This document shows, piece by piece, positions 1,642-47,429 of a stretch of DNA of 64,000 nucleotides; the first letter of the stretch is position 1, and every line of letters starts with the position of its first letter. A model generated the notes under the pieces. The model saw only the letters and a list, made by a program, of their open reading frames with translations, did not search any database and was not told where the DNA came from. The translations under genes were made by a program, and so were the position numbers. The DNA comes from Oculina patagonica (taxonomy: Eukaryota), in assembly GCF_052425735.1 (NCBI RefSeq), contig NC_135770.1, positions 19,964,001 through 20,028,000 on the forward strand, read 5' to 3'.

Positions 1642-1844
1642 CATGGTATGATCACTTGTTTTGAATCAACCAATGAGACCAACATTGTGTGAAATGGGGG
1701 AAATCCATTTCAAAAAACATCTGGGAACAATAGTTGGCTGCAATCCTATTTGTTTACTGCTCTCTAAAAGTACACTGCAGTGACTTTACACTAACTCAGA
1801 CTTGGAGCTGACTGAATTATTGTCATTGTTGTTGTCTTTGACAG

Positions 1845-10759: not shown

Positions 10760-11536
10760 ACTACCACCACACCTCTCATAAGATGTAATTGAATTAAGAG
10801 GTGAACCTCTGATTAATGGAATGGAATAAGATGCTTTTTCCTTGGCTGAGATCATAAAAAAATGTCGAAAAAAACTGTGAGCACACTCCAGACAGTCGAC
10901 TTCTTCTAAAGTAGAATTTTTACTTCGTAATTGAAATATCTGACATAATTTTTGGGGTGTACTGAAGCCCCTTGTAATAAAGGACAATTAAAACAATAGA
11001 AGTGCCTTACTAGACGCTTAAATAAAAAAAATATGTATGTTAATACATCAAGGTGATTTAACCTTAGATTACGCAGGACATGTAGAGTGAAAAACTAATA
11101 AATTCCTTTATATAGATTTATGCAAGGTTCAGGATTGTTAGATTTTCTCCACATTTTAAGTGTGGGGTGCAAGACTTATTTTTATGCATTTGAACCCCAA
11201 ATAATGTGATGGAAAACTGTTGAATATTTCCTCTCCTAGTTGAAATTCATTAATGGTCAACTTGGAGCATAATTAGGGGCCCCAATATTTTCTCAGTGGT
11301 TTGAAGACACTTACACAGTATTTCAAACAAAATTAATTTGCATGTGAATAGCTGCTACAGATACCATTCATTCCCTGTTAGGAAGTGTTAGCATCAGTAA
11401 AAAGGTTGGTCTGTTGTATTTGAGCAAGTCAGTCATACATTACTACATGGAATATTGCCATACCACAGTGATCGTGCAGGTTCTAAAAGGTGATTAATGT
11501 AAAAAATGGAGTTTACAGGGTTACTTTCCTGAGTTA

Positions 11537-16115: not shown

Positions 16116-18489
16116 TTACTCTCGAAATGGTGAGTCTTTAGACAGCAGGAGAGACCATCCTTGAAATGGCTGAACAGACACTGAATCTGAAGTGTCGTCA
16201 GTATGGATGGTAAAACCCGGCATTCCTGCCACAAGTTTGGCAGTGTCAGTCACACCATCCATGTGATTGATGTCGACACCAGCTGGTTTTCTGAGCTGGA
16301 GTGGTAAACTGACCAGGCCGCTCGTCATCTGGCTGATATCCATGTCATCTTTCCTGCCCTCCAAAAACTCGGTTATCCATCCCCTGTAACGATACTTGCC
16401 CTCAATGACCATCCCCGAGCCGTAAGCATTCTCATAAGTGATAACATGACTCCACCATTTCCGATCTGGCTTGCCCTTGTAAGTAGCCAACAATTTGCTG
16501 AACACTAGCTCCACAACATTCCACCACTCTGATGTCAAGCCAAGATTGTACTGTATCGGTTCAAGCAGTGTTCGCAGTACCTTCAGTTTGGATTTTAGTT
16601 TTTTCCAGTCATCTTCAGTGCCTAGCATCTCAATTGCAGGGATTCCGCAACCTCCAAGCATGCTGTAAATAAAATACTCTTGAACTGAATACATCAATGT
16701 GATCTGCGAAACGATCTTCTGTACTGCAGTTGTGGTGCTGAAGTCCGCCGTCATTCCATCCACGAACTCAGGTACTTTGACATTCTCTTGTATTCCCTTC
16801 CCTATTTGATCAAAGAACCAACTGTAGTCAACGGTATAGATGCTTCGATCAGGTACTTCCACTTCAATGGTTTTCTATAATAACAATATTAATATTATTA
16901 ATAAAATGATGATGATGATGGTGTGTCTTAAGTCCAACTTTTTATTATGCAAATTCCGCAAAAACATGTTTTATTGTTTTGTCAACCAACATGGCCGCCT
17001 TGTCACGTGGTTGCAAACCAAGAATTGAATTTTTTCCCGGTTCTCGGTTTCTCGTTCTCCGTTACTCTGTTTAGTAACACCCCTCATGTGTATTTAAAAG
17101 CTTACCTTTCCCTCGTGATCAACAAACATCTTGCGAACGGACTCTTCCTTCGCGTTTCTGTCGATAGCCCCGACGATTCCAATCAATGAGTATCAATAAT
17201 CAATAAAATCAATAGTTATCAATAATAATCAATTGATTGATATTGATTGATATTGATAATCAATTAAAATCAAAGCCGCAATGTTGAGTGATTTTCGATT
17301 TTCATTGATTTTCATTGATTGCCATTGATTGTCATTGATTTCTATTGAAAACTTAAATCGGTTTTATTTTTATTTTTTTTTTTAATAAATCTCACGGACG
17401 AGGACAGAGACCCAATTTTATTTCTGATATCCGATTACTGAAGTAAAGTACCACAGAAACAACAGTAATAATTAACAGTAACTTTTTATTATATTCATTT
17501 CTTTGCTGTATCATCCTATTGACATGTATTGACAACTATTTCAAACATGCATTTCCTGCAATTTAGTTGGTGTGTTCGTTTATATGACATTAACAATAGC
17601 GTTACTCGAACTAGACTTCAATATTGTTTCGTTTTCTCAATTCTAGATAGATCAGTGCAATCAAACAGAAACAATTTAACAATTTAATAAAATTTAACAA
17701 TTTAATAAAATCGACTACACAAGAAATAGAAATCTTCACAGACATGGCGCCGATGATGTGTTTCAGTGTGTTTGCAAACGCGCCGGGAAACGCGTTAAAT
17801 CAAGCAAATGCCTTTGTAGCCGGGTTTTTACTGTTGCACAATCAGCTATTGATTATCAATTAAAATCAATGAAAATCAATGAAATTAAGACGGCTCGGTG
17901 AGTGATTTTCGATTTTTATTGATTATGTAAATTAATCAATATCAATCAATTGATTACTATTGATTAATATTGATTATATTGATTGAAATCAATGATTGAT
18001 TTTCATTGATTGAAATCGTCGGGCGATAGCGCAAGCCACTCGTCTGATAACACTGAACCACCAGTCATCTGGGGAGGTTCGTAATTTCCAGTGGTTGTTG
18101 TAGGCTGTCAGAACGGCAGAAAACAATCCGCAATTTCCAAGCGAATAAATGCTCTCCGTTGATCCCAAGGCGGCAATCATATCTTGTGGAAGAGAGTAAT
18201 TTACCCCCGTATTTGGATGGTAGACAGCTCTTATTTCTCGTTCCGAGGATTGACCCAGCGAGTAATCCTTGATCAACTGTTTTGCTTGGCTGGGTACAAG
18301 TTTGCTGTCTTCGACTTTGACTGGAACCAGATTGATGGCAAGAAGGACAGAATTGACACTCACTCCATCGACCGTGGTGTGTTGACTAATAACAGGAGCC
18401 TTAGCTTTGTTCTTAGCCATCGTGCAAACGGTAAACAAGCAACAGAATTTTCCAACAGTCAGAACAGCCAGAAATCACACTTTGAGCAT
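16116..18489 (-). pseudogene. DUF4419-like copy 1 (two exons, MITE-disrupted, stop in signal peptide)
   Basis: Exon 2 16116-16874; GT-AG phase-0 intron 16875-17105; exon 1 split by a MITE at 17169-18023, and the frame is restored if the MITE and one TSD are removed. Leader reads MLKV*FLAVLTVGKFCCLFTVCTMAKN. Family motifs AYNNHWKLRTSPDDWW, ADFSTTT, CGIP and YRGWITEF are present. Confidence 0.8.
17169..18023. mobile_element. MITE inserted in the copy 1 coding exon
   Basis: TIR cccgacgatt(c/t)caatcaatga, 7-bp TSD cgatagc, subterminal attgat/atcaat arrays. Confidence 0.9.
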
Positions 18490-20519
18490 CACTTTAGCAT
18501 CGCATGTGACCACTGAGCCGAGAGGAGAATGGGTTCCACTGGTCTTAACGCGGGAAATTTTTGCGCGGGAACGCACGAGACTTCACCCATTTGCGCGCGT
18601 TTTGGACGCGTTTTACAAGACCGCACAAGTTGCTCGGCAACTTTTTGGCAACTTTTCATACTTCGAGCAACTGTTTTTTCCCCAAGAGCATTTTTTTTTA
18701 ATTTCGAACAACTTCTTGTGTTCGGAACAATTTCTAGACCGAAGATTGTCCGAGTGTTGTTCGAAGGTGATATGCACGTTTGGAACGTCTTTCGACCTTT
18801 TTCGAAGATTTGTGAGCTGAGGTTTACTAAAGACTTCCGAAGAATATCCGAAGAGGCACGTTTTGAATATTTTTAGAGCAACTTTTTGGGAAATTTCGAG
18901 CAACCTATGAACAGCCCTACTCCTCAGAACATCCAAGAACTCAGGTGAAAAGAGTTGCATTGTACTTAAATACAGAAAACAGGTAAGCTTAATATAAAAC
19001 TGATGTTGAAACTTGCTTTTCAGGTCAAACTTTAACTGTCGTTTTCACATGTTCACCCAAGGTTGAACTAGGAACAAATTTAAAGCACTCTAAAAAGAGT
19101 CATGGGCTCCAGCTAAAAACAGCTGGTTCCATCAAACATTTTTCCTTTTCAAAAGTTGTATAGGCCTGGTCGGAGACTTATAACAAAATTCAAGTTTTAG
19201 AAGCCATCTGGAGTCATAATCGGTTGTGGTTCCTGAAGTCATGGTTAATAATTGATTAAGTTCCTAGGCCTCTATTTTCGTCGCGGTCAACACAGTTCCG
19301 GTTCGTCACGAAACAAGTAGTAACGTCATAGGACCGCGAACACCTGGGAAAAAGCCGACAGGAACTAGGCAAGGTTATAAATAAGGGCAGGTGCCCCAGG
19401 AGGGGGTGGTGTCTTTAAAAGAAACAGTACATGGTGCCTCAACATGGTAAAGTTGAGAACGTGCTTTTTTGAGCTCAAGCAACACTCAAAGTTATTATGA
19501 CACCTCATAACCATGGAAACAACCTTGAAAACAAAGCCTCGTTGATAGTCTACCAATACAAACAAAAACCTTCTTTGCCTCCACTCTCGTAAGCGACTAA
19601 CTCCAGTTATGACCACCATTGTAAGGATAGTGAAACCCTGTTTCAATTGTCACTCAACATAAGTAATTTAAAGCACTCATAAGCAAAAAAAGTGAACATT
19701 AAGTCATGCGCATCTTTCTAGCTTTTCTCTGGAATACACCTACATGGGCAGTATAAGGAAAGAATATAGATGACGAATTTTTGAAAGGGGGGGGGGGGCA
19801 GGGGGTTAGATGTTAAAGTAGCATGAGTCACAAGTATGTTGTGTTATACCTAATTATTATGCCTTGTTGAGGCACTTTGGCACCAATTTTTTTAAGTCCA
19901 TATAAGATTAGTCAAGTATTGATGCACAGATGCAGCCTGGGGAAGGGCGTTGAGTTGGCGAAAGTGCCCTGAGAAGATTGGTGGAGTATGTTAAGCTTCC
20001 TGAAACCATTACCGTTTCAAATCAAAACACGAATTTCCCTACCCTACTGAAACTTGATCCAAAAATTGATACGCTATTTCAGATCTATCAAAACAGCTCG
20101 AAACCATATCCTTTAGAGCTGCACATACCTGTAAACTGATTGATACGAGTGAGAACTACCTCAAGGTGATGCATTTTGTGTTTATATAAACAAACTACCG
20201 GTAAGACATTTACATCCACTTTGATATGAATCTGAAATCTATTTTTATTTTGAATGTGTGTTTGCTGGTACAAAAGGTTGGAGCAGTCAATAACAACTGA
20301 ATTGCAAAATGAAACTGATGAGTTTCGATCACATCTGCTTCCTTCAGTTCAAAGTTTTTGTTGCCTTTCTTTCACCCACTAAAACTGTCACTTTTGAGGA
20401 ACTAATCTCTACTTAAACAATATACTTTAACAAAACTCCAAATAATTTAATTCAAGCGTTCCTCTTATCCTCTTGGTAGTCCAGATTACCTTGTTTGAAT
20501 AAGTCTTTACTCAGAAGCT

Positions 20520-21713
20520 TTAATACTTGCAAAAAGGAGAGTCTTTAGACAGCAGAAGAGACCAGCCTTGGAATGGCTGTACAGACACTGAATCTGAAGT
20601 GTCGTCAGTATCAACGGTAAATCCCAGCATTCCTGCTACAAGTGTGCCACTGTCCTTCACACAGGAGACAGGGTCTTCAATGGTCAGCGGAACAGTAACA
20701 ACACCAGTTGACATGTCGTCAATTTCCAACAGGTCCTTCTTTCCCTCCAAAAACTCGGTAATCCAGCCCCTGTAAGATTTTTGCCCGCCTGACCCAAAAC
20801 TTTCCTGGTAGCTGATAATATGACTCCACCACTCCCTATCTGGTCTCCCGTGGTAAGTAGCCAATAACTCGCTGAAGACTTTCTCCACCAGATCCCACCA
20901 TTCCGATTCCAAACCAAGATCTTTCTCTATCGGTTCAAGCAGTGTTCGCAGTATCTTCAGTTTGGATTTTAACTTGCTCCAGTCGTCTTCAGTGCCTAAC
21001 ATCTCCACTGCAGGGATTCCACAGTCAAGTATCATTTTAAAATGAAAATACTCTTGAACTGAAGACATCAATGTGATCTGCGAAACGATTTTCTGCACTG
21101 CAGTTGTGGTGCTGAAATCTGCCGCCATTCCATCCACGAACTCAGGTACTTTGACATTCTCTTGTATTCCCTTCGCTATTTGATCAAAGAACCAGCTGTA
21201 GTCGACGGTGTAGATGCCCTGGTTAGTTACTTTCACCTCGATGGTTTTCTTTTCTTCGTGATCAACAAACATCTTGCGAACGGTCTCTTTCTTCGCATTT
21301 TTGTCGATAGCGGAGGCGACTCGTTTGATAACACAGAACCACCAGTCATCTGGCGAGGTTCGTAGTTTCCAGTGGTTGTTGTAGGCTGTCAGAACGGCGG
21401 AAAACAGTCCGCAATTTCCAAGTGAATAAACGTTCTCCGTTGATCCCACTGCGGCAATTACTCGATTAGGAGAATCGATTTTACCTAGCATCGAACCTAG
21501 CAGCTTCCTCTCAATCGCTGAGGCTTCGTCATTTGTGTTTTGAGAATCTTGCGCGTACTCGTTGAACAATTCTTTGGCTTGGCTTTGTACAAGCCTGCTG
21601 TCTACAAACTTAGAAGGAACGAGGTTTTCGGCGAGAACAACACAAGTGATTTTCAATCCATCGGCGGTCGTGCGCTGACTGATAAGAGGCGGCTTCGTTT
21701 CGTAGTTACCCAT
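20520..21713 (-). CDS. DUF4419-like protein copy 2, intronless, ~397 aa (starts MGNYETK)
   Basis: Uninterrupted ORF with first in-frame ATG at 21713. Motifs AYNNHWKLRTSPDDWW, FSTTT, CGIP and GWITEF match my recollection of DUF4419 (PF14388); needs an HMM check. Confidence 0.85.
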   Translation of the reverse strand: MGNYETKPPLISQRTTADGLKITCVVLAENLVPSKFVDSRLVQSQAKELFNEYAQDSQNTNDEASAIERKLLGSMLGKIDSPNRVIAAVGSTENVYSLGNCGLFSAVLTAYNNHWKLRTSPDDWWFCVIKRVASAIDKNAKKETVRKMFVDHEEKKTIEVKVTNQGIYTVDYSWFFDQIAKGIQENVKVPEFVDGMAADFSTTTAVQKIVSQITLMSSVQEYFHFKMILDCGIPAVEMLGTEDDWSKLKSKLKILRTLLEPIEKDLGLESEWWDLVEKVFSELLATYHGRPDREWWSHIISYQESFGSGGQKSYRGWITEFLEGKKDLLEIDDMSTGVVTVPLTIEDPVSCVKDSGTLVAGMLGFTVDTDDTSDSVSVQPFQGWSLLLSKDSPFCKY

Positions 21714-22007
21714 CAGTCGGGTGAGGAGCAAGAAAACAAAACACAAGACGAGAGCTACCGAGGACTGATAACGTAGGACTGATAACGTAGAGTGAGAAAA
21801 TATTCACAAAAGGTAGGAGAATTTTTTTATGGAATGAGGTCGACTGCCTGCTCTCGCGGTAGGTACGTTATGTATGGAAATTTTTGTGTCCCCAGATCCG
21901 CTGAGCGAGGTGAGCGCAGGCGATGGATCCCTCCTCGCGTCTCACGTGACCGACCCTGCGTTTTTTCCGCGGTGCCGTCTGAAGTACACCCACGCGACGT
22001 TTATGTG

Positions 22008-22705
22008 ATGAAGTCTTTGTAATTTTTTGTCGTTTTTTTGTTTTATTTCAATCTTGCTTTCTGCCAAGCCTTGCTTGTCAAACTACACTGGTGCAGTCTA
22101 CGAGCATGTTACATTCTTTGTCGTTGAAAACAAGACTGAATTAACTCACCCAGCTAGCAGCTTTGGAAGTCATGCAGAAGAACCTCGACGTTTACCTTAT
22201 TGTTATTTATTTTCGCGGGACTTAATTTTCGCGATTTTCAAAAAATCGCAAAATTAAAGACCCACGAAAATTTATTTCAAACGTTTCTATTGTACTTTTT
22301 ATGTTAATTTCGTATTTTTGGCCAAATCGCGAAAATTAAGTCCCGCGAAATATTCCCGTTCTATTTTCGCGAAATTAAGTTCCCGCGAAAATAAGTAGCA
22401 ATAAGGTACCAAACAGAGGCAGTCCTGGCAAAATCCAAGGGTGCCGACATCAAAGTCTTTCCAGAGGATGGTTTGTATGGCTTTTACTTTACACGCGAAC
22501 AAATCTTTCCTTTTCTTGAAATTATCACGGATCCATCAAAGATGGAAAATGTTGGATTCCCTGCAGAGATCCCGATCGTTTCGACAACACTGAAGTGTTA
22601 GGGGAGCTGAGCTGCATTGCGCAAAACTCTTCCATTGCGGTGGTTGCTAACATGGGCGATGTGCAGTATTGTGACAAGTCGGATCCACACTGCCCCGATG
22701 ATGGC
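22008..22705 (+). pseudogene. Truncated vanin/pantetheinase pseudogene
   Basis: Near-identical to 34241-34722, with a stop at codon 5 (ATG AAG TCT TTG TAA), small indels, a MITE insertion, and truncation after CDKSDPHCPDDG. Confidence 0.9.
22195..22406. mobile_element. Tc1/mariner-type MITE in the vanin pseudogene
   Basis: ccttattg...ttcgcggga / tcccgcgaa...caataagg TIR with TA TSD. The empty site is seen in the intact gene (gtttaccaaac, ~34421). Confidence 0.9.
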
Positions 22706-23561
22706 TGCGGGGGCAATAATAAAAAAACGCTTTATTTAACCACAATCTGTATTAAAGCAAATATATGCTCGAGGGGTCGTGTGTACGTGTGACTTACTAC
22801 TTACCTAAGAAAAATTAATATTACACTGTAATAAAATGAAATGAACGATATTATATTTTAACAAGAAGCTCTCAAAGCTTAAAACTGACGTGACCAGCCT
22901 ATGGGAAAATTGTGGGGAGACAAAAAAATGCACCCCCCCCCCCCTCCGCCATGCCCATTATCCGCGTCATTTGTGTTGCGACTTACAAACAAAAGGTAAG
23001 AAGACACCTTGTGTGACATTTCATGGTTGACGAGTTCCATCTGCAATTAATTATTTTTCTTATATTCTAATGCTGGCCAAATTTTATCCCCACGATCCTG
23101 ATCCGTGAAGCCAAAAAGTCTATTAAACCAGCATCCAGTGCTGTATCGAATTGCTGCTTAAACATTGAATAACTCGATCTAAAAATGGAAAATTGAAGCA
23201 GATAATTAAATCAATTTTTTGCTGAACTTCTTCCTGGTACACGCGGAAGAATAGTTCGGAATTGATCTTGCGTGATGACATGTCTTTCAGTGACAGCTTA
23301 GAGGACCAACAACTTAACTCAGCCAATGAGTATGTTTTATTGCCAGCCCAATATTTCGAATTATTAAAGCATAGACGGCAACTCATTTGCAGATTATTCG
23401 TTTCTAATAATCAATGAGCCAGCAATTTCGACATAAGCCTACCGCCTTTAGCTGCTATTAAAAGCTGCTGTTCCTACTTAAAACTAAAAAGAACTAAAAA
23501 GTGGAACTCAGTGAATGTAGGCTGTGGCATTGCTTGGGGGTTACTCTCCCTATAGAAGCTA

Positions 23562-24128
23562 CAGTCAACTCTCTCTAAGACGGACACCTTCGGGACCGGC
23601 CGCAGCTGTCCGTCTTGGAGAGGTGACCGCTCTGTAGAGAGTCGAAGTAACACGACACCAGTAATTCTGAGATAATAAAGCTAAACCTTTGCACAATGCA
23701 ACAAACCTTTGCTAACTGCAACAAGATTACAATAATAAAAGGACCGTATTTGCTTGTTAAAGCAAAAATTGAGAGCTTCTACGCAAACTGTAAAACTGTA
23801 ATTAGAAAATGACCTGTGCGACCTCTTAACTGCCCATACACGTAAGCAGAAAAGTGATGTTTTTGGTTAGTAAGCTTGGTATACACGTATTCTTAGGTCG
23901 CTGACTAACTTTGCTTTAGGTCAATACGAAGTTTGGAAGTATTTTCACTAACAAAACATGATAAAAAAAATTTCTCAAGTGTCCGTTAATGATTTTAAAG
24001 TGTCCGTTGTCCGCAGTAGAGAGGTGTCCGTCTTATAGGGAGTTTGGTTACAGTAAAATGACAGAAAAACGGCAGGGACCGTCACCAGGTGTCCTTCTTA
24101 TAGAGGTGTCCATTAAGAGAGTTGACTG
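23562..24128. mobile_element. Tc1/mariner (pogo/Tigger-like) MITE
   Basis: cagtcaactctc / gagagttgactg TIR with TA TSD. Empty site in the paralogous spacer near 52271. A shorter copy is at 46031-46220. Confidence 0.9.
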
Positions 24129-24487
24129 TATAATATTGTAGTAACTAGGGAAATAAAGTCACGCTATCGTGTTTGCTACACATAATATTTAGAGACTATT
24201 TTAAAACTGGCCATTACGTAAGGCAGCTTTCATTTCGAAAAATAAACTTAACCTTTTAGAATCTGGCTTTAACCACTGGTTAAATTTGTCATAATTGAAA
24301 GCAGCCTCTTGAGTATCGGCAGAATTCAAAGCTTTTGTTGCCTTAATTTTGCCAACTAGTAAAGTCTCTATTTTGTCGTCTGTATGTGCTTAATCCACAT
24401 AAACAAAGCTAGAAATTGTCCAACTGTTTCTTCTGGCAATTCAGATTACGTTGTTTGAATAAGTCTTTGGAGACACGTCGTTGGAGC

Positions 24488-25636
24488 CTACTTGAGAAAT
24501 GGTGAGTCTTTAGACAGCAGAAGAGACCATCCTTGGAATGGTTGTACAGACACTGAATCTGAAGCATCGTCAGTGTGGACAGTGAAACCCAGCATTCCTG
24601 CGACAAGCTTGGCATCATCCTTCACACAAGAGACGGGATCTTCCATGATGAGTGGAACAGTGACAAGGCCAGTCGTCATGTTATAGATTTCCGTGGGACT
24701 TTTCTCTCCTTCTAGGAACTCGGTAATCCAGCCCCTATACCCTGAGGTTCCACCTGACTCCCAAGCACGTTTGTAGCTCATAATATGACTCCACCATTTC
24801 CTATCTGGTATCCCCTGAAAAGTAGCCAGTAACTTGCTGAAGACGTTTCCCACTAGATCCCACTACTCCGATGACAAACCAAGATCTTTCTCTATGGGTT
24901 CAAGCAGTGTTCGCAGTACCTTCAGTTTGGAATTTAATTTGCTCCAGTCCTCCTCAGTGCCTAGCATCTCCAATGCAGGGATTCCGCAGAGAGTCCCCAT
25001 CCTAAAGTCGAAATACTCTTGAACTGCATGCATCAATGTGATCTGCGAAACGATTTTCTGTACTGCAGTTGTGGTGCTGAAATCCGCCGTCATTCCATCC
25101 ACGAACTCAGGTACTTTGACGTTATCTTGTATTCCTGTTGCTATTTGATCAAAGAACCAGCTGTAGTCGACTGTATAGATGCTTGTGTCGGGCACAATCA
25201 CCTCGATGGTTTTCTTTTCTTCGTGATCAACAAACATCTTGCGAACTGACTCTTTCTTCGCGTTTTTTTCGATGGCGCAAGCGACTCGTTTGATAACACA
25301 GAACCACCAGTCATCTGGGGAAGTTCGTAGTTTCCAGTGGTTGTTGTAGGCTGTCAGAACGGCAGAAAACAATCCGCAATCTCGAAGCGAATAAATGTTC
25401 TCAGTTGACCCCAAGGCGGCAGTCATTTCATTAGGACGATCGAATCTGTTCTGTTTTAAGTGTTTTCTTTCTTGCGCGTACTCGTTGAGCAATTCCTTCG
25501 CTTGGCTTTGTACAAGCCTGCTGTCTTCAAACTTAGAAGGAACGAGTTTATTGGCGAGCACGACACAATTGATTTTCAATCCATCGGCCGTCGTTCGCTG
25601 ACTGATAAGAAGCGGCTTGGTTGCGTTGTTGCCCAT
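24488..25636 (-). pseudogene. DUF4419-like copy 3, single nonsense codon
   Basis: TGG>TAG at 24863-24865 (SE*WDLV versus SEWWNLV). The rest is in frame and very close to copy 4. Confidence 0.85.
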
Positions 25637-26523
25637 CGTGTGAGGAGCAAGAAAATAAAACACACCACGGAAGCTACCGGGGGCTGATAATGTAGAATGA
25701 GAAATTATTCAAAAAGCTTTTAAATATTCACAAAAGGTTTCAGGAGAAATGTAGTTGAAAACACCACACGCAGCCACGCGCACAGTTCTGACTTCCTCCT
25801 GTCCGCTGAGCGAAGTGATTGCAGGCGATGGATCCCTCGCTTTCGCGTGACCCACCATGCGTGTCCCTGCGTGAGCCGAAATTAGTCGACTAGACACACG
25901 CGACGTTAGACTTGCCCCAAGTCGCTCGTTTTTTAATCGGGCGGGGCCTGGGCCCGATTCATAATCTGCACAGAATTTTTAACCGGGTGGGGGTCTGTGC
26001 CCCCCGGTTCATAATCTACCTTCGGTTTTTTTTTTTTTAGTTTTTTTGTCGGTAGGGCATTGAAGGTCACGCATGTTGATTGGCTTAAAACAGGTCATCT
26101 TTCATCACCCACTGAAATGCCAGTGGAGGAAGGAGGGGAGGGGAAATGTTTTAATTACTTGCCACTTGAGGGATTAAAATTACGTGCGTTATACGCGTTT
26201 TCCGTGTGTTTAACTCAACAACAAATCATCGCTTAGACCACAGAGCAAAATAGAATTGCTGCTCAGTTAGAAATGACCGAATATATGAGAGTCAAGTTAT
26301 ATATTATGCGTTTTAAAAGTAGAACGAAAACAACTCTGATATCTCTACCTTCAAAGTCTTCAAAAGCGATCAAAGTGCCTTTGACCTTTAACACTGATGG
26401 CCGAGTATCGTATATCGCATGTCACGCTTCAACATAACGCACTTCTTGTTGAACAGCAACAAAAGGAAATAAAACGCTACTGGGTATACGTCTAAAAGCC
26501 TTAGGCTTTCTTGTTAGCTAAAA

Positions 26524-26553
26524 CATAGTTAGTAGAGGTGACTACTAACTATG
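26524..26553. mobile_element. 30-bp TIR-only remnant (P-element-like excision footprint)
   Basis: Perfect 12-bp TIR catagttagtag/ctactaactatg around a 6-bp spacer, with a 7-bp TSD gctaaaa. Confidence 0.75.
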
Positions 26554-28850
26554 GCTAAAAGAGTGGTTAAACATTAACCACCCGGTTTCGAGCTACTAAG
26601 TAGCTTCTTGTTTTTTTTTGTCGGTAAATCGATCCAGACCAACGCGGCCCAGCCGGCTCTTCTGTCACGGTCACGCAAGATTTAATATTTAATAGCGATC
26701 AGCCGATCACTCGCGTTTAACATGAACACTCTGCTCTCTGAAATGTATAATTTTGTTTCATTCCATATTTTACAAAAAGAGAGGGCTGAATATATCACAT
26801 AGCGAAAACAAAGACCGCTTGGACATGTCCAAGCTATTTAAAACTACCACTACATCATGCATCAGACTCATGTCACGCGATCTCTCGCTTGTAGCTATAA
26901 ATAATCATTCACCTATTTTCTGTTTGAATACTCTGCGCTCTGTTTGTGTGAAATATTTATTGTTGTGTTACTCAAGCGTTTGGCTCGGAGCGATTACAAG
27001 TCGTACAATTTACCTGGAACGTGTTAAATATTGCAAAACGACGACTTATTTTCTAAATATCCCAATTTTTGTTTTGAGTTTACGGTATTTTGAGAATCGA
27101 AACGTTATCGAAACGTAAGTTGCAAGCTCAGCAAGAATGTGTCAAAGCACGGGATACACGTCGTCGCGCCAGGGGAATTACCAAAAGCTTGTCGGAAGAC
27201 GCTAAACGGAGAAACACAATGGGATGGCCTTAGTCTACTTTTTATTTTGGCGTGATTTGGCTTTCTTTTAAATGAACTGGTTTGGGTTTATTTTATTGAA
27301 CATTCGGAACAAAATAAATATTTGCATGCGTAAGCAGGCATTTTTCCGGCTAGGCATGTGGTTTTAAAAAGCAAAAGATGACGTGGTAAAGGAAATTCAT
27401 GTCACGTTCACTCCGTGACCACAGGGAGCCCAGGCTCACGCTTTGACAACTCGGTCAAAATGGCGGCTTCAAAATTATAAAGATTTGTATGAAACATTAT
27501 AGGAAAAAATCAGATCGAAAGAAAATATAATAAACCGCTAGTAAAGTTCACATTTCATTTCATATGTTGTCTATGTGACGTTTCTTGACTGTTCTAAAGC
27601 ATTTAAACCCTATTTAACCGATATTTTTAATTTTAGTTTACTCTTACCTAAATATATGCAAGGGTGAACACTTCCGACGCTAGATAAACACCACTGTTCG
27701 ACACAAATGAGCCAAAAATTGCTTTTAATTTGATCCACTCACTCCAAAACTTCGCATGGGCATAATTCGAAGACCATTCTTTTACTGCAGCAAATTTTTG
27801 ATTCGCCTGCCACTCTCCGCGATTAAAGAATACGGGAAAAATGACCAAGGTTTGCAAACTTTTGGCTTTCTCCAACACCTTGAACCAGAGAGAGTAGACG
27901 CATTTTTAATTAGCCTTGACTTTCACGTGCAGCCTCACGCTATGATTGGGCGATGGTTGTCAGGGCGACGATACTTTTTTCCCGTGGGGGAAGGAGGCAA
28001 ACGAGACTGTCAAGGGTGCTCTGCCTTACACAAGTACACTGGCCCGAGCTCCCATAGGGTAATTTTGCCTCACATACAATTCTAGAATCACAGGTATACC
28101 GTGACGGAATTTTGCAGAACCCTGCATATTAATATTCGTCGTTAAAACCGGGAGACTGATCAACTGACGGACAAAAATAACTAAAAGAGTCCTAAAACCA
28201 GGCGCTAATCAAATGACTTGTTACTCTGTCAGTTTTTCCGTGAGATTTCTGTTTCTCGTCGTGAGATTGAAGTGAAAACCGTGAGTCTCAGGACAAAATC
28301 GTGAGACTTGAGAGGTCTGCAGATGCTGTTTACACTGACAGTTGCGTTTATTTTTAAGCTTTTTGTTTGTTTTTCTTAGTGATAAAAGCAATCACACGAG
28401 ATTCCCACCATTCTAGTCATATTAGTCAATCAGATAATAGCTACCGTTTCGTGAGAACAATGTGTTTTATGATTTTGGTACAGCAACAGGGGAAAAGCAT
28501 GTCTTAAACAGGGTTGCGCCTTACAGAACTGTAGGTATGTCGACCGACAATATGTCAGGAAAACCTTTTTTTGCCGTTTCCATTTTTGATTAGATCCGAT
28601 TTCAAAGATGTAATAGACCGTAGTAGTCGAACCACATGTGTGCCTTTACTTCAGTTGACTAGCTAGCTTAGGCAAGTTAGAATTTGTGCTGATTAAACTA
28701 GTTCAAAACAACTGATCCCGTGGACATTATTTTCCTTATGTGTCTTCAATTTGAGTATCACTCGAAAACACACGCGAAAGGTCAACCATGAAACTTTGCT
28801 TGGTAGTGTGCGTGAGATTATTGAAACGTGAGGCTGAAAACGTTCTTATC

Positions 28851-29769
28851 CAGGCGTAGTCAATCGATAGAAATCGATATCGGAAATCAATCGATACAAT
28901 CGATATCTATCGATATCAATCGGTGATTGATATCGATTGAAATCGGTAATCGATAACAATCGAACTCACAGAAAAATATTATTATCGATTGTTATCGATT
29001 GAGAAAATCGATAATAATCGATAGCAATCGACAGTAGTCGATAACAATCACTAATCCCAAGAAGCCTCTGGAGGTGTATTCGTTTCAAACATATTCTAAA
29101 GATGGCGTTACTATTTAGTAAAACAATACGACACCGGCGTTTAAATGGTGAAACATTTTATTAATTCAGCATCTAGTCCTGCCGAAGTCCAGTCTGGGGT
29201 CCAGGCAGAATGTTTTCATAAAGATTCTCGGGGTCCATTCAACCCAGGCAGCGGTCAGAGCGCTGTCGATTGCTTCTCCATTATGGCATTCAGTTCTTGC
29301 GTTGGTGAAAGTTCAACTCGATCCAATAATTATATGCACGGACATTGTAGCCCTCCCAAATGATTCCATCTTTTTGCTTCATACAATGCATTTATGACGT
29401 TGTTATAGCGAGACTAGAGGGTTGCGCACCGCTACATATTGTTCTTGTTCTTTTAGTACAAGTTTGGTAATATTTGCATTACATATCCACGATTGAAGAA
29501 CTCAATACACCCATAAAACAACATCGTGTCCATGTTTAACATGAGGAATTGACATAAATAACTTCCGATAAAAATCGATAACAATCAATAGCAATCGATA
29601 AACCAATCCTTATCGATTTCCGATGTCAATCGAACTCACAACTTTTTTTCTTTATCGATTCCTATCGAGTGGTATCGGAAATCGATATCAATCTTCCTTG
29701 TCAATCTTCGATTGATATCGATTGCTATTGATTGTTATCGATTATCGGTTTATCGATTGACTACGCCTG
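28851..29769. mobile_element. hAT-like MITE with ATCGAT subterminal arrays
   Basis: caggcgtagtcaatcgata / tatcgattgactacgcctg TIR; 8-bp flanks ttcttatc/gtcttatc. Confidence 0.85.
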
Positions 29770-30149
29770 GTCTTATCAGTCACAGACACAAAACAACAAA
29801 GGAGAATCTGTGACTTTGTTGACCTTTTTAAGATATTTAAGAATTATCTGTGACAGATAAATGCTTATGAATCTGTGTGTGTCTGTATTCTTTTTGTGCT
29901 GTTATCGGAGTCCTATAACTGTTCAACGGCTACATGCTGGAGTGTACTTTGAATTTAAGTCAAGCCTGCTTGGAAAAATCGCTTTTGAAAAGGTGTCGGA
30001 AACAAGTCGCGTGACAATAATAAGTACAAACATTATCCGCCTGACAGAAATAGCAACGATCAATTAGAATGAATCAAGATGGACGCTTAATTACCGTGAT
30101 TGTGATCGGAATGGATACTATTAAGGCATCGATTTCAAAACTTTAAGCA

Positions 30150-30510
30150 TGTAATCTTATACAATAATTAAAGATAGAAACTTCACGGACAGTTACTCAG
30201 AGTTTCACGCACGATGCGATCATCAGACTGTGTCGTTAGATGCGGTGAAATACAATTTAAACTACGTTCATGGAGGACGGTTGGAACGATCCTGTCTCTG
30301 ATTGGCCGTGTAGTACTTGTTTTCGTGCCTGCACTTGGTAACAAGCTCAGATCTTTTGTTCAAGAAGGTGGATCTGTCAGCTGATAGTATGCAGAGCTTC
30401 TCCGTCAGAAACAAATTGCAGCGTGACGGGTTTCCGCTGTAAGCGCTTGCTCTCGTGACAATGGACCACATGATCGAAAATTCGGTGTTGTTGTCTTTCA
30501 GGTCCCAAAT
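30150..30510 (-). mobile_element. Penelope-like retroelement 3' fragment (end of GIY-YIG region plus terminal repeat sequence)
   Basis: WDLKDNNTEFSIMWSIV...CNLFLTEKLCIL...LNKRSELVTKCRHENKY resembles Penelope-like endonuclease C-termini and is followed by a hammerhead motif. Confidence 0.8.
30189..30231 (-). ncRNA. Minimal type I hammerhead ribozyme
   Basis: Minus strand reads acagu-CUGAUGA-ucgcaucgugcgu-GAAAC-ucuga-GUA-acugu: stem I, full catalytic core, stem II cgca/ugcg, short palindromic stem III and a GUA cleavage triplet. Confidence 0.85.
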
Positions 30511-30923
30511 CTTATATATATTTTTTAGTTGGATTTTAAGCCTTTCGCGTGAGAACCTTTTGTAGTTGGAATAAACCTTTGTTTTTATCTTTAACTGTGA
30601 AATCGTGAAGTTCAGCGCAAGCATTCACGACAAAGGTTTCTGAATTGACAAGTGAATAAAGAGTTTCGTATATCGTGTTGTGAATGTCACAACTTTTATC
30701 GAGCGACAAAAGTAGCTTTAGTTTTAGTTTAAATTTTAGGGGTGAGGAGTCTAAATGTTTCTTTATGTTAGATGCACGCTTTTTAATTTTCGATATCTTT
30801 ACAAGCAATAAATAGACGTGAAGAGCGGTCTATTTTCAAATAAATCAAACTCTGAAAAGAGTCACAAGACAATAAGCCCAGAGGGCTTTTGATCTAAAGA
30901 TTTTACTGTGCGGCGCCGTGCCT

Positions 30924-33734
30924 TTACAACAACAACAATTTATTGAGGTATTTCCATAAAAATACATGGCATTACCTACTTACACTTGAGAAATTACAAG
31001 TAGTATCAGAAATAAAACAAAAATGCGATTTTATCATTTGGAAAATAAAGTTTCATGTCTAAGAGACATAGCTTGAAAAACAAAAGCAGCAGTTGATCGA
31101 CAAACAGCAGGATCAATGCTGTTACAAAGAAATAAAGATTTTGCATTAATATCAAACTCGTTAAAAATACTATATTTGGCGGTTATTTCATTAAAGAACT
31201 TTAAACGTATGTTTTCGTATAGCTTGCATGAAAATAAGAAATGCATTTCGTTTTCAATTTCATCCGAATGGCAGAAAGAACAGATTCTCAAATTAATAGG
31301 AGTCTTGGGTATTGTGTGTCTACCAGTTTCGATACGTAATTTGTGATTCCCAAGTCGAAATTTGCTAATGGCAGTTCTGTGGTGAGGATTGTTGATTGCG
31401 TCCAGAAAACTAGATTTTTTGGTATCTTTTTTAAATGAATGATAAAATTGTAATTTTCTGTTTGTGCTAATTAGTTTTAGTTGATGAGCTATTAACGCTT
31501 TGCTAATGTTTTGCTTAATGTAAGAAGTAAAGAGTTTTCCGTTGTTTTCATTTAATATTAAAGAGCTCGAGTTGTATTTATTGCATAACTGATTCATTTT
31601 AAGCATTAGACCTGTCTGGGTTTTATCAGCCATCTCCTTAGAAAGCTGTAGACATTGCTTAGCGATGTTATTTTCTGGTAAGCTCTGAAGATGAATCCAA
31701 AATTTTACTATGGAGGTTTCGATGGCTAATTTTAGAGGAAGCCTTCCAAGTTCATTTCTGGTTGCAACATTTGGGCATTGTTTATTCACTCCTAAGAATT
31801 GTTTGCAAAAATATATGTGTGTTTTTTCGATGTCATCTTTCTCCCAATTGTTGAAATCATCTTTATCGTAGATACCCCAAACTTCTGAGCCGTACAGTAA
31901 AATAGGGAGAAAGAGAGAATCAAAGAGTTTATTTGTGACACTAAGGGACAATTTTGAAAAATCCAAGTAACGGCGAGTAGCAAAGATGGATCTTCTTGTT
32001 TTATCTTTTAAGTTTGATTTACAGTCTCTAAAGCTTCCGTTTGCAGAAAAATTTATACCAAGATAAGTGTAATTGTTGACAATTTCAATTTTGTCATTGT
32101 TTATATGAAAATAATGCTTGTCGAGTAAAGATTTCCTGCATTTCTTTTGGAAGATGACAACTTTCGTTTTCTTTGGATTAACGGACAGCAGCCAATCGTT
32201 ACAGTATTTTTCAAGAATGGAAAGTGCCTTCTGCAGACCTTTAGCTGAGTGAGAGATTAATACTAAGTCGTCTGCGTAAAGTAAACAGTTTAAATTGGAG
32301 CCGTTAGGTAGAGCGATAGGATCTGTGTCTTCTCGGTCTAGTAAAAAAGGGATTTCATTTAAGTATAAATTAAATAACATGGGCGACAGAATGCAGCCTT
32401 GACGTACACCTTTCTGATAATCGAAAAATTCAGTCCTTTGGTCACCATACTTAACAGAACATTTAGTTTTTGAGTAAAGATTTTTAATCAAATCATAGAA
32501 ATTTCCACCAATCTTATAATGTAAAAGTTTGTAGAATAGTCCATCATGCCAAACCGAATCAAAAGCTTTCTTGAAGTCAATAAAACAAGTGTACAGTTTG
32601 CCTCTTGCTGTATGACTGACATATTTATCCACTAATGTTCTTAGGGTAAAAATATGATCTGATGTGCGATGATTAGGTAAAAAACCGATTTGAGCTTGAT
32701 GTAATATGTTTTGTTGAAGTACATGATTTTTCAACCTGGCATTGAGGACCGAGGTAAAAAGTTTTCCGAGACAGCTACTAATGCATATTCCCCTGTAGTT
32801 AGAAGGGTCGTTTTTATTTCCCGATTTATAAATTGGTGTAATTAATCCTTCGCACCAAGTGCTAGGAAAGAAACCGCTTTTCAGAATAAGATTAAATAAT
32901 TTGCAAAGGGCAGTGATAAAATATTGCATTCCAGCTTTTAGCATTTCATTGCGAATCTTGTCAGGACCGGGGACTTTCTTTGATCGAAGTAATTTTGTCA
33001 TAGATTCTATTTCAGCAGGTGTAATAATTGTATCTAAATAATTGTGGGTGGTTTTTGTTTCTTCTAAGCTGAAGAGTTTCTCCCCTAAAATATTATTGCG
33101 AGGTAATAATGATGAGGTATTTATGGACGAATGTAAATCTTGAAAATGGTGATACAACTTGTCAACAGGAATATCATGATTGTTGGAAGGGGGGTTGTGG
33201 CCTTCCTTCATTAATTTGAGGTTATCCCAAAATTTATGACTGTCTTTGTGATTAACAAGGTCTTCAATTTGGGAATTGAGATGTTTCGATTTTTTGTACT
33301 TAATCAATTTCTTGAATGTTTTGCGAGTCGTATGGTAATCATGTCTAAGTTTTGCATCGTAAGGATTTCTATGTTTTTGGTTGGAAAGCATACTGAGATT
33401 CTTTCGCAGAAGTGCACAGTCTTTATCAAACCATAAGTTATGTTTCTTTGTTTTCTTTTTAGGACAAGCGATTTTGAGAGATCGTAAACATGTATCAGTT
33501 ATGATTTTAGTGAATTGTTCTGTTGCCAAATCAATTCCTTTACAATCAAAGGTAAAGTTAGTCTTCTCAAAGTTCGATAGACGTAAAAGAACGTCATCTT
33601 GTTTTAAGGCATTGCGAAAATTTTCAAAGGATGATTGATCCCAGATGAACTGTTTTGGATTATTGAAAGTTTTTACATTTGTATGACTGGTAGTTTTGGA
33701 AGAGGCTGGTGTTTGGAGATTTAACCAGCAGATG
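30924..33734 (-). mobile_element. 5'-truncated non-LTR retrotransposon (probably RTE-X-like clade)
   Basis: Open ORF2 from the end of the endonuclease through RT; 3' aataaa followed by a (TTG)n tail at ~30924-30943. No clear TSD. Confidence 0.88.
31034..33529 (-). CDS. LINE ORF2 reverse transcriptase with C-terminal CCHC zinc knuckle (5'-truncated; frame open to ~33730)
   Basis: PGPDKI, NYRGI, FIDFKKAFDSV, GVRQGCILSP, LLYADD, YLG and HKLRIETGRH...CSFC...HFLFSC motifs with no stops over 831 aa. Confidence 0.9.
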   Translation of the reverse strand: MATEQFTKIITDTCLRSLKIACPKKKTKKHNLWFDKDCALLRKNLSMLSNQKHRNPYDAKLRHDYHTTRKTFKKLIKYKKSKHLNSQIEDLVNHKDSHKFWDNLKLMKEGHNPPSNNHDIPVDKLYHHFQDLHSSINTSSLLPRNNILGEKLFSLEETKTTHNYLDTIITPAEIESMTKLLRSKKVPGPDKIRNEMLKAGMQYFITALCKLFNLILKSGFFPSTWCEGLITPIYKSGNKNDPSNYRGICISSCLGKLFTSVLNARLKNHVLQQNILHQAQIGFLPNHRTSDHIFTLRTLVDKYVSHTARGKLYTCFIDFKKAFDSVWHDGLFYKLLHYKIGGNFYDLIKNLYSKTKCSVKYGDQRTEFFDYQKGVRQGCILSPMLFNLYLNEIPFLLDREDTDPIALPNGSNLNCLLYADDLVLISHSAKGLQKALSILEKYCNDWLLSVNPKKTKVVIFQKKCRKSLLDKHYFHINNDKIEIVNNYTYLGINFSANGSFRDCKSNLKDKTRRSIFATRRYLDFSKLSLSVTNKLFDSLFLPILLYGSEVWGIYDKDDFNNWEKDDIEKTHIYFCKQFLGVNKQCPNVATRNELGRLPLKLAIETSIVKFWIHLQSLPENNIAKQCLQLSKEMADKTQTGLMLKMNQLCNKYNSSSLILNENNGKLFTSYIKQNISKALIAHQLKLISTNRKLQFYHSFKKDTKKSSFLDAINNPHHRTAISKFRLGNHKLRIETGRHTIPKTPINLRICSFCHSDEIENEMHFLFSCKLYENIRLKFFNEITAKYSIFNEFDINAKSLFLCNSIDPAVCRSTAAFVFQAMSLRHETLFSK

Positions 33735-34240
33735 AGTTAAGCCAAAGCACTGAAAGAGGTCAGGTGGTCAAACATTACCCGCACGATTATAAACTGCTTG
33801 CAGTTCTTGTTTCTTTGTAAGACTTTGTGCAACATGTTGCGCGCAACAACACTTTTTTTTATTTATTCACCCTTGATAGGAACACTTGAGCAGTTTGAAG
33901 ACGAGTTCTGTTTTCGATTCTGTTCCCAGACACGTTGTCTAGCCATGTCTGCTCGATTCCACATCACTTCAGCAAAATATCGTTCATAGTTATTCATTGC
34001 TTATGCATAAGCTCTGAAATAGAAAAAGAATAACAATTTCAGTATTTGTTAACGGTTAAATTAAGGATTTATCGTGGAAAAAGCCATCTCGTTAGTTCGT
34101 GACTATAAATCCGAACCTTTCAGCTAATTACTCTTACGGTTTGTTGCGGTTTGGTCTCGCATCTGATTGGTCGCGAAACAATAAACAGTCCAAAAATAAT
34201 TTTTGGCGTCACGCTTTTATGATTTTCACTGGAATATGCG

Positions 34241-35803
34241 ATGGAGTCTTCGCAATTTGTTGCCGTTTATTTTTGTTATATTTCAATCTTGCTTTCTGTC
34301 AAGCCTTGCTTGTCGAACTACACGGGTGCAGTTTACGAGCATGTTACATTCTTTGTCGTTGAAAACAAGACTGAGTTAACTCGCCCAGCAGCCTTGGAAA
34401 TTATGAAAAAGAACCTCGATGTTTACCAAACACAGGCAGTCCTGGCAAAATCCAAGGGTGCCGACATCATAGTCTTTCCAGAGGATGGTTTGTATGGCTT
34501 TGACTTTACACGCGAACAAATCTTTCCTTTTCTTGAAATTATCCCGGATCCATCAAAGCTGGAAAAAAGTTGGATTCCCTGCACAGATCCCGATCGTTTC
34601 GACAACACTGAAGTGTTAGGGGAGCTGAGCTGCATTGCTCAAAACTCTTCCATTGCGGTGGTTGCTAACATGGGCGATGTGCAGTATTGTGACAAGTCGG
34701 ATCCACACTGCCCCGAAGATGGCAGATACCAGTTTAACACTGATGTGGTCTTCGATACAGACGGCACATTACTAGCAAAGTACCACAAGCAACACTTGTT
34801 TCACGAAGATCAGTTCAACACTCCTCAGAAAGTAGAAATCGTGATTTTTAAGACGTCGTTTGGTGTGACGTTTGGAGTGTTCACTTGTTTTGACATGCTT
34901 TTCTATGATCCTGCTATTGTGCTTGTCGAGAAGTTTGGTGTTCGCAACATTGTGTTCCCAACTGCATGGATGGATGGATTTCCCATCCTGGCCTCAGTAG
35001 AGTATCAACAGGCATGGTCAATATTGACATGTGCCAATCTTCTAGCAGCCAATCAGCATGTACCCCGGTTGGATATTGTTGGGAGTGGGATTTACTCTTG
35101 CGGAGAAGCATTATCGTATGTCTATGACTTGAAGACCGATGAAGGGCATCTTTTGGTGGCAAGTTTGCCTAACTTAGAGATGCACCCAAAACTACCTCTG
35201 GAGCATGACACCTGTCAATCAAACAATGTGCAATCTAATTTGCCACTGTATGATATGAAGCATGAATCCTGTCAATCAAAGAATGTGCCATTCAACTTGC
35301 CAGCGAATGACATCAAACAGGCAAGATCAATCTTTCATTCGAAGCTGCTTCATGACATCTACACGTTCGTCAAAATTGATGGTGCTGAGGGCAATGCTTC
35401 AGTTTGTGCTAATGAGTTTTGCTGCTATGCAAGTTACACCTTGCCAAGTCAGCAACCTTTGGATAATGAACTTTTTGCATTAGGAGCTTTTAACGGACAC
35501 CATGACTCATACAGCTACATCATCCAGGCTTGTGTTTTGATAAAATGCAACAGCATGTTGAAAGATTCCTGTGGGACGGCGACGCTAACTTCATCAACAA
35601 TATTCAATTCATTCCAGCTAATGGGGAACTTTTCATCAAAGGCTTATGTATTTCCTGAGGTTCTGGCATCCAATGTGGAGCTAATCGCAGCGAAGGAAAT
35701 CTCAATCTCTGGGAATGTTAATATGAGTGTAAACTCATTTGAAAAACCTTTGCTGTCAGCTGTTCTTTTTGGCCGGATTTATGAGCTTGATCATGTTGAA
35801 TAG
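34241..35803 (+). CDS. VNN: Vanin/pantetheinase-biotinidase family amidohydrolase (nitrilase fold), secreted, single coding exon, 520 aa
   Basis: Hydrophobic signal peptide, then AVYEH, IIVFPEDG (Glu), YHKQHLF (Lys), FTCFDMLF (Cys) and FPTAW, followed by a Cys-rich base domain ending LFGRIYE. No hydrophobic GPI tail. Confidence 0.93.
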   Translation: MESSQFVAVYFCYISILLSVKPCLSNYTGAVYEHVTFFVVENKTELTRPAALEIMKKNLDVYQTQAVLAKSKGADIIVFPEDGLYGFDFTREQIFPFLEIIPDPSKLEKSWIPCTDPDRFDNTEVLGELSCIAQNSSIAVVANMGDVQYCDKSDPHCPEDGRYQFNTDVVFDTDGTLLAKYHKQHLFHEDQFNTPQKVEIVIFKTSFGVTFGVFTCFDMLFYDPAIVLVEKFGVRNIVFPTAWMDGFPILASVEYQQAWSILTCANLLAANQHVPRLDIVGSGIYSCGEALSYVYDLKTDEGHLLVASLPNLEMHPKLPLEHDTCQSNNVQSNLPLYDMKHESCQSKNVPFNLPANDIKQARSIFHSKLLHDIYTFVKIDGAEGNASVCANEFCCYASYTLPSQQPLDNELFALGAFNGHHDSYSYIIQACVLIKCNSMLKDSCGTATLTSSTIFNSFQLMGNFSSKAYVFPEVLASNVELIAAKEISISGNVNMSVNSFEKPLLSAVLFGRIYELDHVE

Positions 35804-46220: not shown

Positions 46221-46279
46221 TAATCACTATTCTGCCCTATTTGAACAATCTGTCCAGCTGTTAATGAGTCTTCAGGAGC

Positions 46280-47428
46280 TTACTTGCAAAATGGGGAGTC
46301 TTTAGACAGCAGAAGAGACCAGCCTTGGAATGGCTGTACAGACACTGAATCTGAAGTGTCGTCAGTGTGGACAGTGAAACCCAGCATTCCTGCGACAAGC
46401 TTGGCATCATCCTTTATCCTAGACACGCGATCTTCAATGATGAGTGGAACAGTGACAAGACCAGTCGTCATGTTATAGATTTCCGTGGGACTTTTCTCTC
46501 CTTCCAGGAACTCGGTAATCCAGCCCCTGTACCCTGAGGTTCCACCTGACTCCCAAGCACGTTTATAGCTCATAATATGACTCCACCATTTTCTATCTGG
46601 TATCCCCTGGTAAGTAGCCAGTAACTTGCTGAAGACGTTTTCCACTAGATTCCACCACTCCGACGTCAAACCAAGATCATTCTCTATGGGTTCAAGCAGT
46701 GTTCGCAGTACCTTCAGTTTGGAATTTAATTTGCTCCAGTCGTCCTCAGTGCCTAGCATCTCCACTGCAGGGATTCCACAGAGAGTCCCCATCCTAAAGT
46801 CGAAATACTCTTGAACTGCATGCATCAATGTGATCTGCGAAACGATTTTCTGTACTGCAGTTGTGGTGCTGAAATCCGCCGTCATTCCATCCACGAACTC
46901 AGGTACTTTGACGTTATCTTGTATTCCTGTTGCTATTTGATCAAAGAACCAGCTGTAGTCGACTGTGTAGATGCTTGTGTTGGGCACAATCACCTCGATG
47001 GTTTTCTTTTCTTCGTGATCAACAAACATCTTGCGAACTGACTCTTTCTTCGCGTTTTTTTCGATGGCGCAAGCGACTCGTTTGATAACACTGAACCACC
47101 AGTCATCTGGCGAGGTTCGTAGTTTCCAGTGGTTGTTGTAGGCTGTCAGAACGGCAGAAAACAATCCGCAATCTCGAAGCGAATAAATGTTCTCAGTTGA
47201 CCCCAAGGCGGCTATCATTTCATTAGGACGATCGAATCTGCTCTGTTTTATGTTTTCTCTTTCTTGCGCGTACTCGTTGAGCAATTCCTTCGCTTGGCTT
47301 TGTACAAGCTTGCTGTCTTCAAACTTAGAAGGGACGAGTTTTTTGGCGAGCACGACACAAGTGATTTTCAATCCATCGGCCGTCATGCGCTGACTGATAA
47401 GAGGCGGCTTGGTTTCGTTGTTGCCCAT
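46280..47428 (-). CDS. DUF4419-like protein copy 4, intronless, ~382 aa (starts MGNNETK)
   Basis: Uninterrupted ORF with all family motifs; ATG at 47428. Confidence 0.88.
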   Translation of the reverse strand: MGNNETKPPLISQRMTADGLKITCVVLAKKLVPSKFEDSKLVQSQAKELLNEYAQERENIKQSRFDRPNEMIAALGSTENIYSLRDCGLFSAVLTAYNNHWKLRTSPDDWWFSVIKRVACAIEKNAKKESVRKMFVDHEEKKTIEVIVPNTSIYTVDYSWFFDQIATGIQDNVKVPEFVDGMTADFSTTTAVQKIVSQITLMHAVQEYFDFRMGTLCGIPAVEMLGTEDDWSKLNSKLKVLRTLLEPIENDLGLTSEWWNLVENVFSKLLATYQGIPDRKWWSHIMSYKRAWESGGTSGYRGWITEFLEGEKSPTEIYNMTTGLVTVPLIIEDRVSRIKDDAKLVAGMLGFTVHTDDTSDSVSVQPFQGWSLLLSKDSPFCK

Positions 47429-47429
47429 C

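Follow-up and report, generated by a model that had tools for sequence, protein, structure and literature searches.

The 64,000-nucleotide stretch of the genome of the coral Oculina patagonica analyzed here (G000:C13:19964001-20028000, without a single N; hereafter “the window”) carries eight tandem copies of a single-exon gene of the DUF4419 family, all on the minus strand, and, lodged among them on the plus strand, an intact gene and a pseudogene of the vanin/pantetheinase family. The array continues beyond the window edge (at least eight copies in O. patagonica), and smaller DUF4419 clusters are present at other sites of the genome. Our subject is a pair of units in which a DUF4419 gene and a vanin sequence face away from each other across a CpG-rich spacer: unit 2 (DUF4419 copy 2, spacer, and vanin pseudogene) and unit 3 (DUF4419 copy 3, spacer, and intact vanin). 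The evidence supports the view that these are two copies of one head-to-head unit, duplicated and then subject to complementary losses. The features concerned, together with the remaining copies of the array, are the following.

16116-18420, minus strand: DUF4419 copy 1, split
20520-21713, minus strand: DUF4419 copy 2, an intact single-exon open reading frame (ORF) of 397 amino acids (PF14388, E 2.7e-61)
21714-22007: unit-2 spacer, 294 bp and CpG-island-like, with its core at 21897-21961 and the terminal motif CACGCGACGTT at 21991-22001
22002-22705, plus strand: vanin pseudogene, made up of 6 bp of upstream sequence and the first ~483 bp of the coding sequence (equivalent to vanin 34235-34723)
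22197-22406: miniature inverted-repeat transposable element (MITE) with terminal inverted repeats (TIRs), 210 bp, inserted in the vanin pseudogene
24488-25636, minus strand: DUF4419 copy 3, with one in-frame premature TAG (24863-24865 on the plus strand)
25637-25907: unit-3 spacer, with its core at 25802-25862, ending in CACGCGACGTT at the break
34241-35803, plus strand: intact vanin/pantetheinase paralog, a single-exon ORF of 520 amino acids between DUF4419 copies 3 and 4
46283-47428, minus strand: DUF4419 copy 4, tail-to-tail with vanin, the side of the linkage that is shared with another coral (contig L037)
49229-50934, minus strand: DUF4419 copy 5
52731-54395, minus strand: DUF4419 copy 6
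58320-60120, minus strand: DUF4419 copy 7
62426-63565, minus strand: DUF4419 copy 8

The protein of copy 2 scores 208 bits against the PF14388 profile (cut-off 25), which places it in DUF4419, a family with 5,171 representative relatives at E ≤ 0.001 that is widely expanded in stony corals; several of the copies of the present array are broken. The product of the intact vanin gene has a CN_hydrolase domain (PF00795, E 1.8e-14) followed by a Vanin_C domain (PF19018, E 9.5e-31), matches solved pantetheinases at E 1e-124, and has the motifs FPEDG (E81), YHKQHLF (K183), and FTCFD (C216) aligned to those of 7SLV; these three residues we take, from general knowledge of the family, to be the catalytic Glu-Lys-Cys triad. 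By its predicted protein the gene is a member of the vanin/pantetheinase family and a predicted pantetheinase. An exact-protein look-up of it returned no matching record. Its ratio of nonsynonymous to synonymous divergence (Ka/Ks) from the paralog on chromosome C9, described below, is 0.215, and the window vanin has therefore been under purifying selection.

An earlier reading of the window made from its sequence alone (the sequence-only reading) proposed that the DUF4419–vanin pair had been duplicated head-to-head, and alignment upholds this: the two units are collinear through the DUF4419 gene, the spacer, and the 5′ end of vanin (20474-21821 with 24434-25748, 21897-21961 with 25802-25862, and 22002-22705 with 34235-34723). 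The 3′ flanks of the two DUF4419 genes align as well (20348-20508 with 24325-24468), the collinearity starting some 170 bp beyond the DUF4419 stop codon and running through the gene, its 5′ untranslated region (UTR), and the spacer to nucleotide 490 of vanin. The losses are complementary, as had also been proposed: unit 2 retains an intact DUF4419 gene beside a dead vanin, and unit 3 an intact vanin beside the DUF4419 gene with the TAG. The dead vanin aligns in two blocks separated by the MITE, 22002-22196 at 87.3% identity and 22407-22705 at 96.7%; a 2-bp deletion, a 4-bp insertion, and a 1-bp deletion lead to early stops, and the sequence ends after about codon 161. The two sides of the MITE have diverged to different degrees, with 19 mismatches in 191 aligned bases on the 5′ side and 9 in 299 on the 3′ side (Fisher p 0.002), a difference that would reflect ongoing conversion of one side by the live vanin.

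The starts of the pair are as close as first described: we measured 294 bp between the ATG of copy 2 (21713, minus strand) and that of the pseudogene (22008). The GC-rich sequence between them does recur upstream of copy 3, its core (21897-21961) matching 25802-25862 at 83% (E 2e-10), with a local score of 73 against about 18-20 in shuffle controls (made on other pairs of similar length); the core is flanked on both sides by weaker collinear similarity, and both copies of the spacer terminate in CACGCGACGTT. A search of the whole 529-Mb genome found the spacer at two sites only, and among the eight DUF4419 copies of the window only copies 2 and 3 carry it upstream. The interval 21850-22001 has a GC content of 0.59 and an observed/expected CpG ratio of 1.38 (1.3-1.4 for the spacer), compared with 0.40 and 0.83 for the window. 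Unit 2 thus has the form of a divergent pair whose starts flank a CpG-rich region at a distance below 1 kb, taken here between ATGs (294 bp) and not between transcription start sites.

In unit 3 the spacer and the intact vanin are separated by 25908-34234 (8,327 bp), and the description of this interval as some 8.3 kb of mostly repeats proved accurate, since all but 66 bp of it fall in dispersed repeat families. Searches against the coral's own genome resolved it into at least seven transposable elements, arranged as a nest.

25929-25980, 26605-27419, 30893-30926, and 33737-33813: transposable element C, about 1 kb, in four pieces, rebuilt from four full copies elsewhere
25981-26604: repeat D, inside element C
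27418-28148: repeat E, inside element C
28141-28850 and 29771-30893: repeat A, inside element C
28851-29770: TIR element, splitting repeat A
30926-33741: long interspersed nuclear element (LINE), inside element C, with an intact reverse-transcriptase ORF of 831 amino acids (RVT_1) at 31034-33529 on the minus strand
33859-34234: transposable element G, MITE-like, with ends TTACAGTC…GACTGTAA

Homology between the intact vanin and the pseudogene begins at 34235, and the last base of element G, 34234, is the exact point at which homology to the pseudogene unit resumes. The corresponding empty site, GACGTTTATGYGATG, is unbroken both in unit 2, which reads GACGTT-TATGTG-ATG, and in the vanin ortholog of another coral on contig L037, which reads GACGTT-TATGCG-ATG; in the intact Oculina unit it is split, with GACGTT at 25902-25907 and TATGCG-ATG from 34235. 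It follows that the 8,327 bp were inserted later and that the ~295-bp spacing came first. An unbroken site, and a dispersed-repeat insert that ends at the break, are what a nested insertion leaves behind; target-site duplications were not resolved. The sequence-only reading had allowed that the short spacing might be a deletion specific to the pseudogene, and the empty site in L037 shows that it is not. Copies of the LINE on several other chromosomes are 99.6-100% identical to it; its arrival must therefore have been very recent, as apparently was the activity of its family. A second Oculina assembly (L018, 99.4% identical) also contains the nest, or at least its proximal 640 bp. The stretch 33700-34234 has no similarity to either spacer; we considered this as evidence against co-duplication and rejected it because the stretch is largely element G itself.

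The history of the DUF4419 gene bodies is different from that of their flanks. In a sliding comparison, copy 3 matches copy 4 at 94-100% over the gene body, and both flanks of copy 3 resemble copy 2, not copy 4. This looks like a recent gene-conversion tract, in which copy 3 would have been converted by copy 4. The two matching segments (24488-25697 and 46275-47489) lie 21 kb apart, and their 95.5% identity is confined to the gene body; copy 4 lacks the TAG.

Other corals tell us where the vanin gene came from. Oculina has three vanin loci. The vanin on C9 (G000:C9:12.64-12.66 Mb) shares 81-85% of its protein (depending on the tool) and 84.5% of its nucleotides (coding sequence only) with the window vanin, and sits between an SMP_LBD/C2 gene and a GNAT acetyltransferase, a neighborhood that is also present in three other coral assemblies (L011, L012, and L013/L014). 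No DUF4419 gene was found at this C9-type locus in any of the four corals. Judged by gene order, the C9-type locus is the ancestral vanin locus and the window vanin a derived paralog. Synonymous divergence (Ks) of the window vanin from the C9 copy is 0.37, about equal to that from the L011 copy, and the protein tree does not resolve its position relative to these two. The C9 vanin of Oculina and the vanins of L011, L012, L013, and L014 are all single uninterrupted ORFs.

No vanin was found in other DUF4419 arrays in the stretches read (Desmophyllum pertusum L019/L020, 47 kb; L034; L035), and the other DUF4419 loci within the Oculina genome are without one as well. The exception is another contig of the L011 species (L036/L037), on which a vanin 86% identical in nucleotides to the window copy adjoins DUF4419 genes. 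Downstream of this vanin, blocks of L037 are collinear with the window at 38.1-39.2 kb and 44.6-44.8 kb, followed by DUF4419; the L037 vanin is therefore a positional ortholog, and this paralog was already linked to the array when the two species diverged. On L037 the two meet tail-to-tail, which corresponds to the vanin–copy 4 side in Oculina. Upstream of the L037 vanin, 9.2 kb contain a Sulfotransfer_4 gene and transposons, with no DUF4419 gene and no spacer, and the homology between Oculina and L037 stops 12 bp before the vanin ATG; the head-to-head contact is therefore a rearrangement junction, so far seen in Oculina only. The spacer, sought on both strands of L019, L020, and L034-L037, returned noise-level scores only. 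Synteny had been put forward as a check on the head-to-head pair, and it spoke against conservation: the pair is absent from the relatives examined, and the sole relative in which the genes are linked has them tail-to-tail and without the spacer.

Some further observations concern these loci. The L037 vanin (9273-10765) is divided between two ORFs that overlap, its frame shifting near 9881-10031, which marks either a pseudogene or an error in the long-read assembly. A Tara metagenome scaffold (L033), from a coral-associated assembly, carries two vanins in head-to-head orientation (438-1927, minus strand, and 2202-3704, plus strand) with about 275 bp between them; one is broken up into three ORFs, and the pair stems from an independent local duplication of vanin. 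A tandem array of at least 11 Sulfotransfer_4-like sequences occupies G000:C3:19168665-19214891. An apparent match between 13.8-14.9 kb, left of copy 1, and L037 1432-1740 was considered as synteny and rejected as a high-copy repeat.

The window is a birth-and-death DUF4419 array with a derived vanin lodged inside it, and we think it probable that the head-to-head contact is a local rearrangement within that array and not a selected module. Several points weigh against this reading or some part of it. Over the gene body, copies 2 and 3 agree at only about 80%, and copy 3 has a closer relative than copy 2; the co-duplication of the DUF4419 gene thus rests on the flanks, on the collinearity, and on a conversion that we infer. 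A homolog of 22706-24324 was sought downstream of copy 2 and was not found, so we can only infer the exact geometry of the tandem duplication. Within the nest, 25908-25928 and 33814-33858 (the 66 bp mentioned above) fit no repeat family. A search for the Oculina counterpart of the region upstream of the L037 vanin hit nothing but transposons and, on another chromosome, a Sulfotransfer_4 array; either side of the junction at −12 may be the ancestral one. Finally, the sequencing runs compared with 20400-26399 are contigs, none recorded as RNA and all only presumed to be, from which neither strand nor transcript ends can be read.

Read in that light, the contigs of run X1 tile copy 2 from before 20400 to 21849 (136 nt past its ATG) and leave the unique intergenic bins empty, a coverage that fits a transcript of copy 2, presumed from these contigs, starting just downstream of the conserved spacer core. 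Contigs of runs X1 and X3 gave no cover of unique pseudogene sequence, and run X5 has one low-depth contig, without strand, over 21836-22155. Most likely, the spacer is the promoter of DUF4419 copy 2, and it may once have driven both genes. The same runs bear on the short repeats of this region: 22197-22406 and 23545-24135 are very high-copy short TIR elements, whose contig depth in each of the four runs exceeds that of unique sequence 100- to 1000-fold, and many contigs join across 23580-24017, showing that shorter variants of the 23545-24135 element exist.

The alternatives concern both the shape of the unit and its meaning. That the 295-bp spacing is secondary, the ancestral pair having stood about 8.6 kb apart until unit 2 lost the intervening DNA by deletion, is a formal possibility only, in whose favor one can cite the 66 bp of the interval outside repeat families; against it stand the composition of the interval as a nest of dispersed repeats with its outer ends at the homology break, the uninterrupted GACGTTTATGCGATG in an independent species, and the very recent arrival of the inner LINE. 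It is already contradicted by the data, and we give it next to no credence. A more serious proposal is that only the spacer and the vanin 5′ fragment (about 930 bp) were copied beside an existing DUF4419 copy, as filler DNA or by conversion for example. Copy 2 is closer over the gene to copies 5, 6, and 8 (84-85%) than to copy 3 (~80%), as such an event would leave it, and the left edge of the homology specific to the units merges into sequence common to all copies of the array. In both units, however, homology is unbroken from the spacer through the 5′ UTR into the gene, and copies 2 and 3 can be aligned in their 3′ flanks too; the low identity of the two bodies would be explained by copy 4 having overwritten that of copy 3. 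We therefore regard copying of the fragment by itself as unlikely, if a fair distance from negligible.

The sequence-only reading had gone further and had seen in the pair a shared bidirectional promoter and perhaps a functional module, duplicated because DUF4419 and vanin work as a unit. The closeness of the divergent ATGs across a CpG-island-like spacer invites this idea, as do the survival of the spacer core in the two units amid the decay of other intergenic sequence and the fact that this vanin paralog is linked to the DUF4419 array in two coral species. The comparison with other genomes does not bear it out: the pairing is absent from the ancestral vanin locus in four corals and from the arrays read in three corals, the head-to-head contact and the spacer were found in no other species examined, and DUF4419 genes elsewhere, in Oculina as in the three other corals, do without vanin. 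Further, each unit lost a different partner after the duplication, 8.3 kb of transposons have been tolerated between the intact vanin and its spacer, and the pseudogene side has no clear contig cover in X1 or X3. A selected module of this kind is, in our judgment, improbable. We would attach very little weight to a related possibility, namely, that in the Oculina lineage the −12 junction gave rise to a novel divergent promoter of the CpG-island type, placing vanin under regulation of the DUF4419 type, with the spacer still acting on the intact vanin across the nest and both proteins serving one pathway; if true, it would be the first functional lead for DUF4419.

We return to the reading that we prefer, a derived vanin inside a DUF4419 array that is turning over, and to the history that goes with it. 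In this lineage a DUF4419 gene, together with about 290 bp of CpG-rich sequence upstream of it, meets the divergently oriented vanin 12 bp short of the vanin ATG. A unit of about 2.3 kb (DUF4419, spacer, and the first 490 bp of vanin) would have been copied once, probably by local tandem duplication. The original junction is kept only in the left-hand copy (copy 2, spacer, and the truncated, frameshifted vanin pseudogene). In the right-hand unit, a MITE-like element and the ~1-kb element landed between −7 and −6 of the vanin ATG, and later insertions, including the very young LINE, piled into the ~1-kb element, moving vanin 8.3 kb away from its spacer. Gene conversion probably acted on both units, with copy 4 overwriting copy 3 over the gene body and with vanin homogenizing the pseudogene in its 3′ part. 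The history is one of ordinary array turnover: segmental duplication, conversion, pseudogenization, and transposon nesting.

Each of the elements of this history has familiar counterparts. Birth-and-death tandem arrays with conversion and pseudogenes elsewhere resemble this one in their many copies on one strand (at least eight here, several broken), in their conversion-type mosaic identity, and in segmental duplications that carry along a fragment of an adjoining gene; the difference is that the family here is DUF4419, which has no known function. Like the bidirectional CpG-island promoters of animal gene pairs, unit 2 has head-to-head genes less than 1 kb apart over a CpG-rich spacer, but the Oculina arrangement is not conserved across species, its two-way transcription is only putative, and neither unit today has two intact genes across its spacer, the vanin of unit 3 lying 8.6 kb away behind transposons. 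The vertebrate vanins (VNN1, VNN2, VNN3, and biotinidase; 4CYF, 7SLV) share with the window vanin the CN_hydrolase and Vanin_C architecture, the aligned PED, YHKQxLF, and FTCFD motifs of the Glu-Lys-Cys triad, a hydrophobic, signal-peptide-like N-terminus, and a tendency to local duplication (of which the Tara scaffold L033 is an example); the coral gene differs in being single-exon, in being, in its window copy, a derived paralog outside the SMP/C2–vanin–acetyltransferase neighborhood, and in being known here from sequence alone.

Neither structure nor literature offered a function for the partner of vanin. An AlphaFold2 model of copy 2 (mean predicted local distance difference test score, pLDDT, 70; predicted template-modeling score, pTM, 0.72) gave no usable fold match, the best Foldseek E being 0.12 in the PDB and 0.07 among the Swiss-Prot AlphaFold models, and the best VIA-align Z 4.7. 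Residues 196-230 of the model are of very low confidence although the sequence is strongly conserved there. A literature search found DUF4419 mentioned only in passing and coral pantetheinase not covered, and no link between DUF4419 and pantetheine metabolism emerged from the literature or the fold searches.

The window thus provides a clean, reconstructable case of a tandem array acquiring, and then copying, part of an adjoining gene, and it shows that what looks like a “bidirectional pair” can be the junction of a rearrangement instead of a module. A tempting but unsupported functional lead for DUF4419 is thereby removed. For the corals themselves, the ancestral vanin locus (SMP/C2–vanin–acetyltransferase) can now be told apart from the derived paralog embedded in the DUF4419 array, a distinction that is useful for the annotation of coral genomes.

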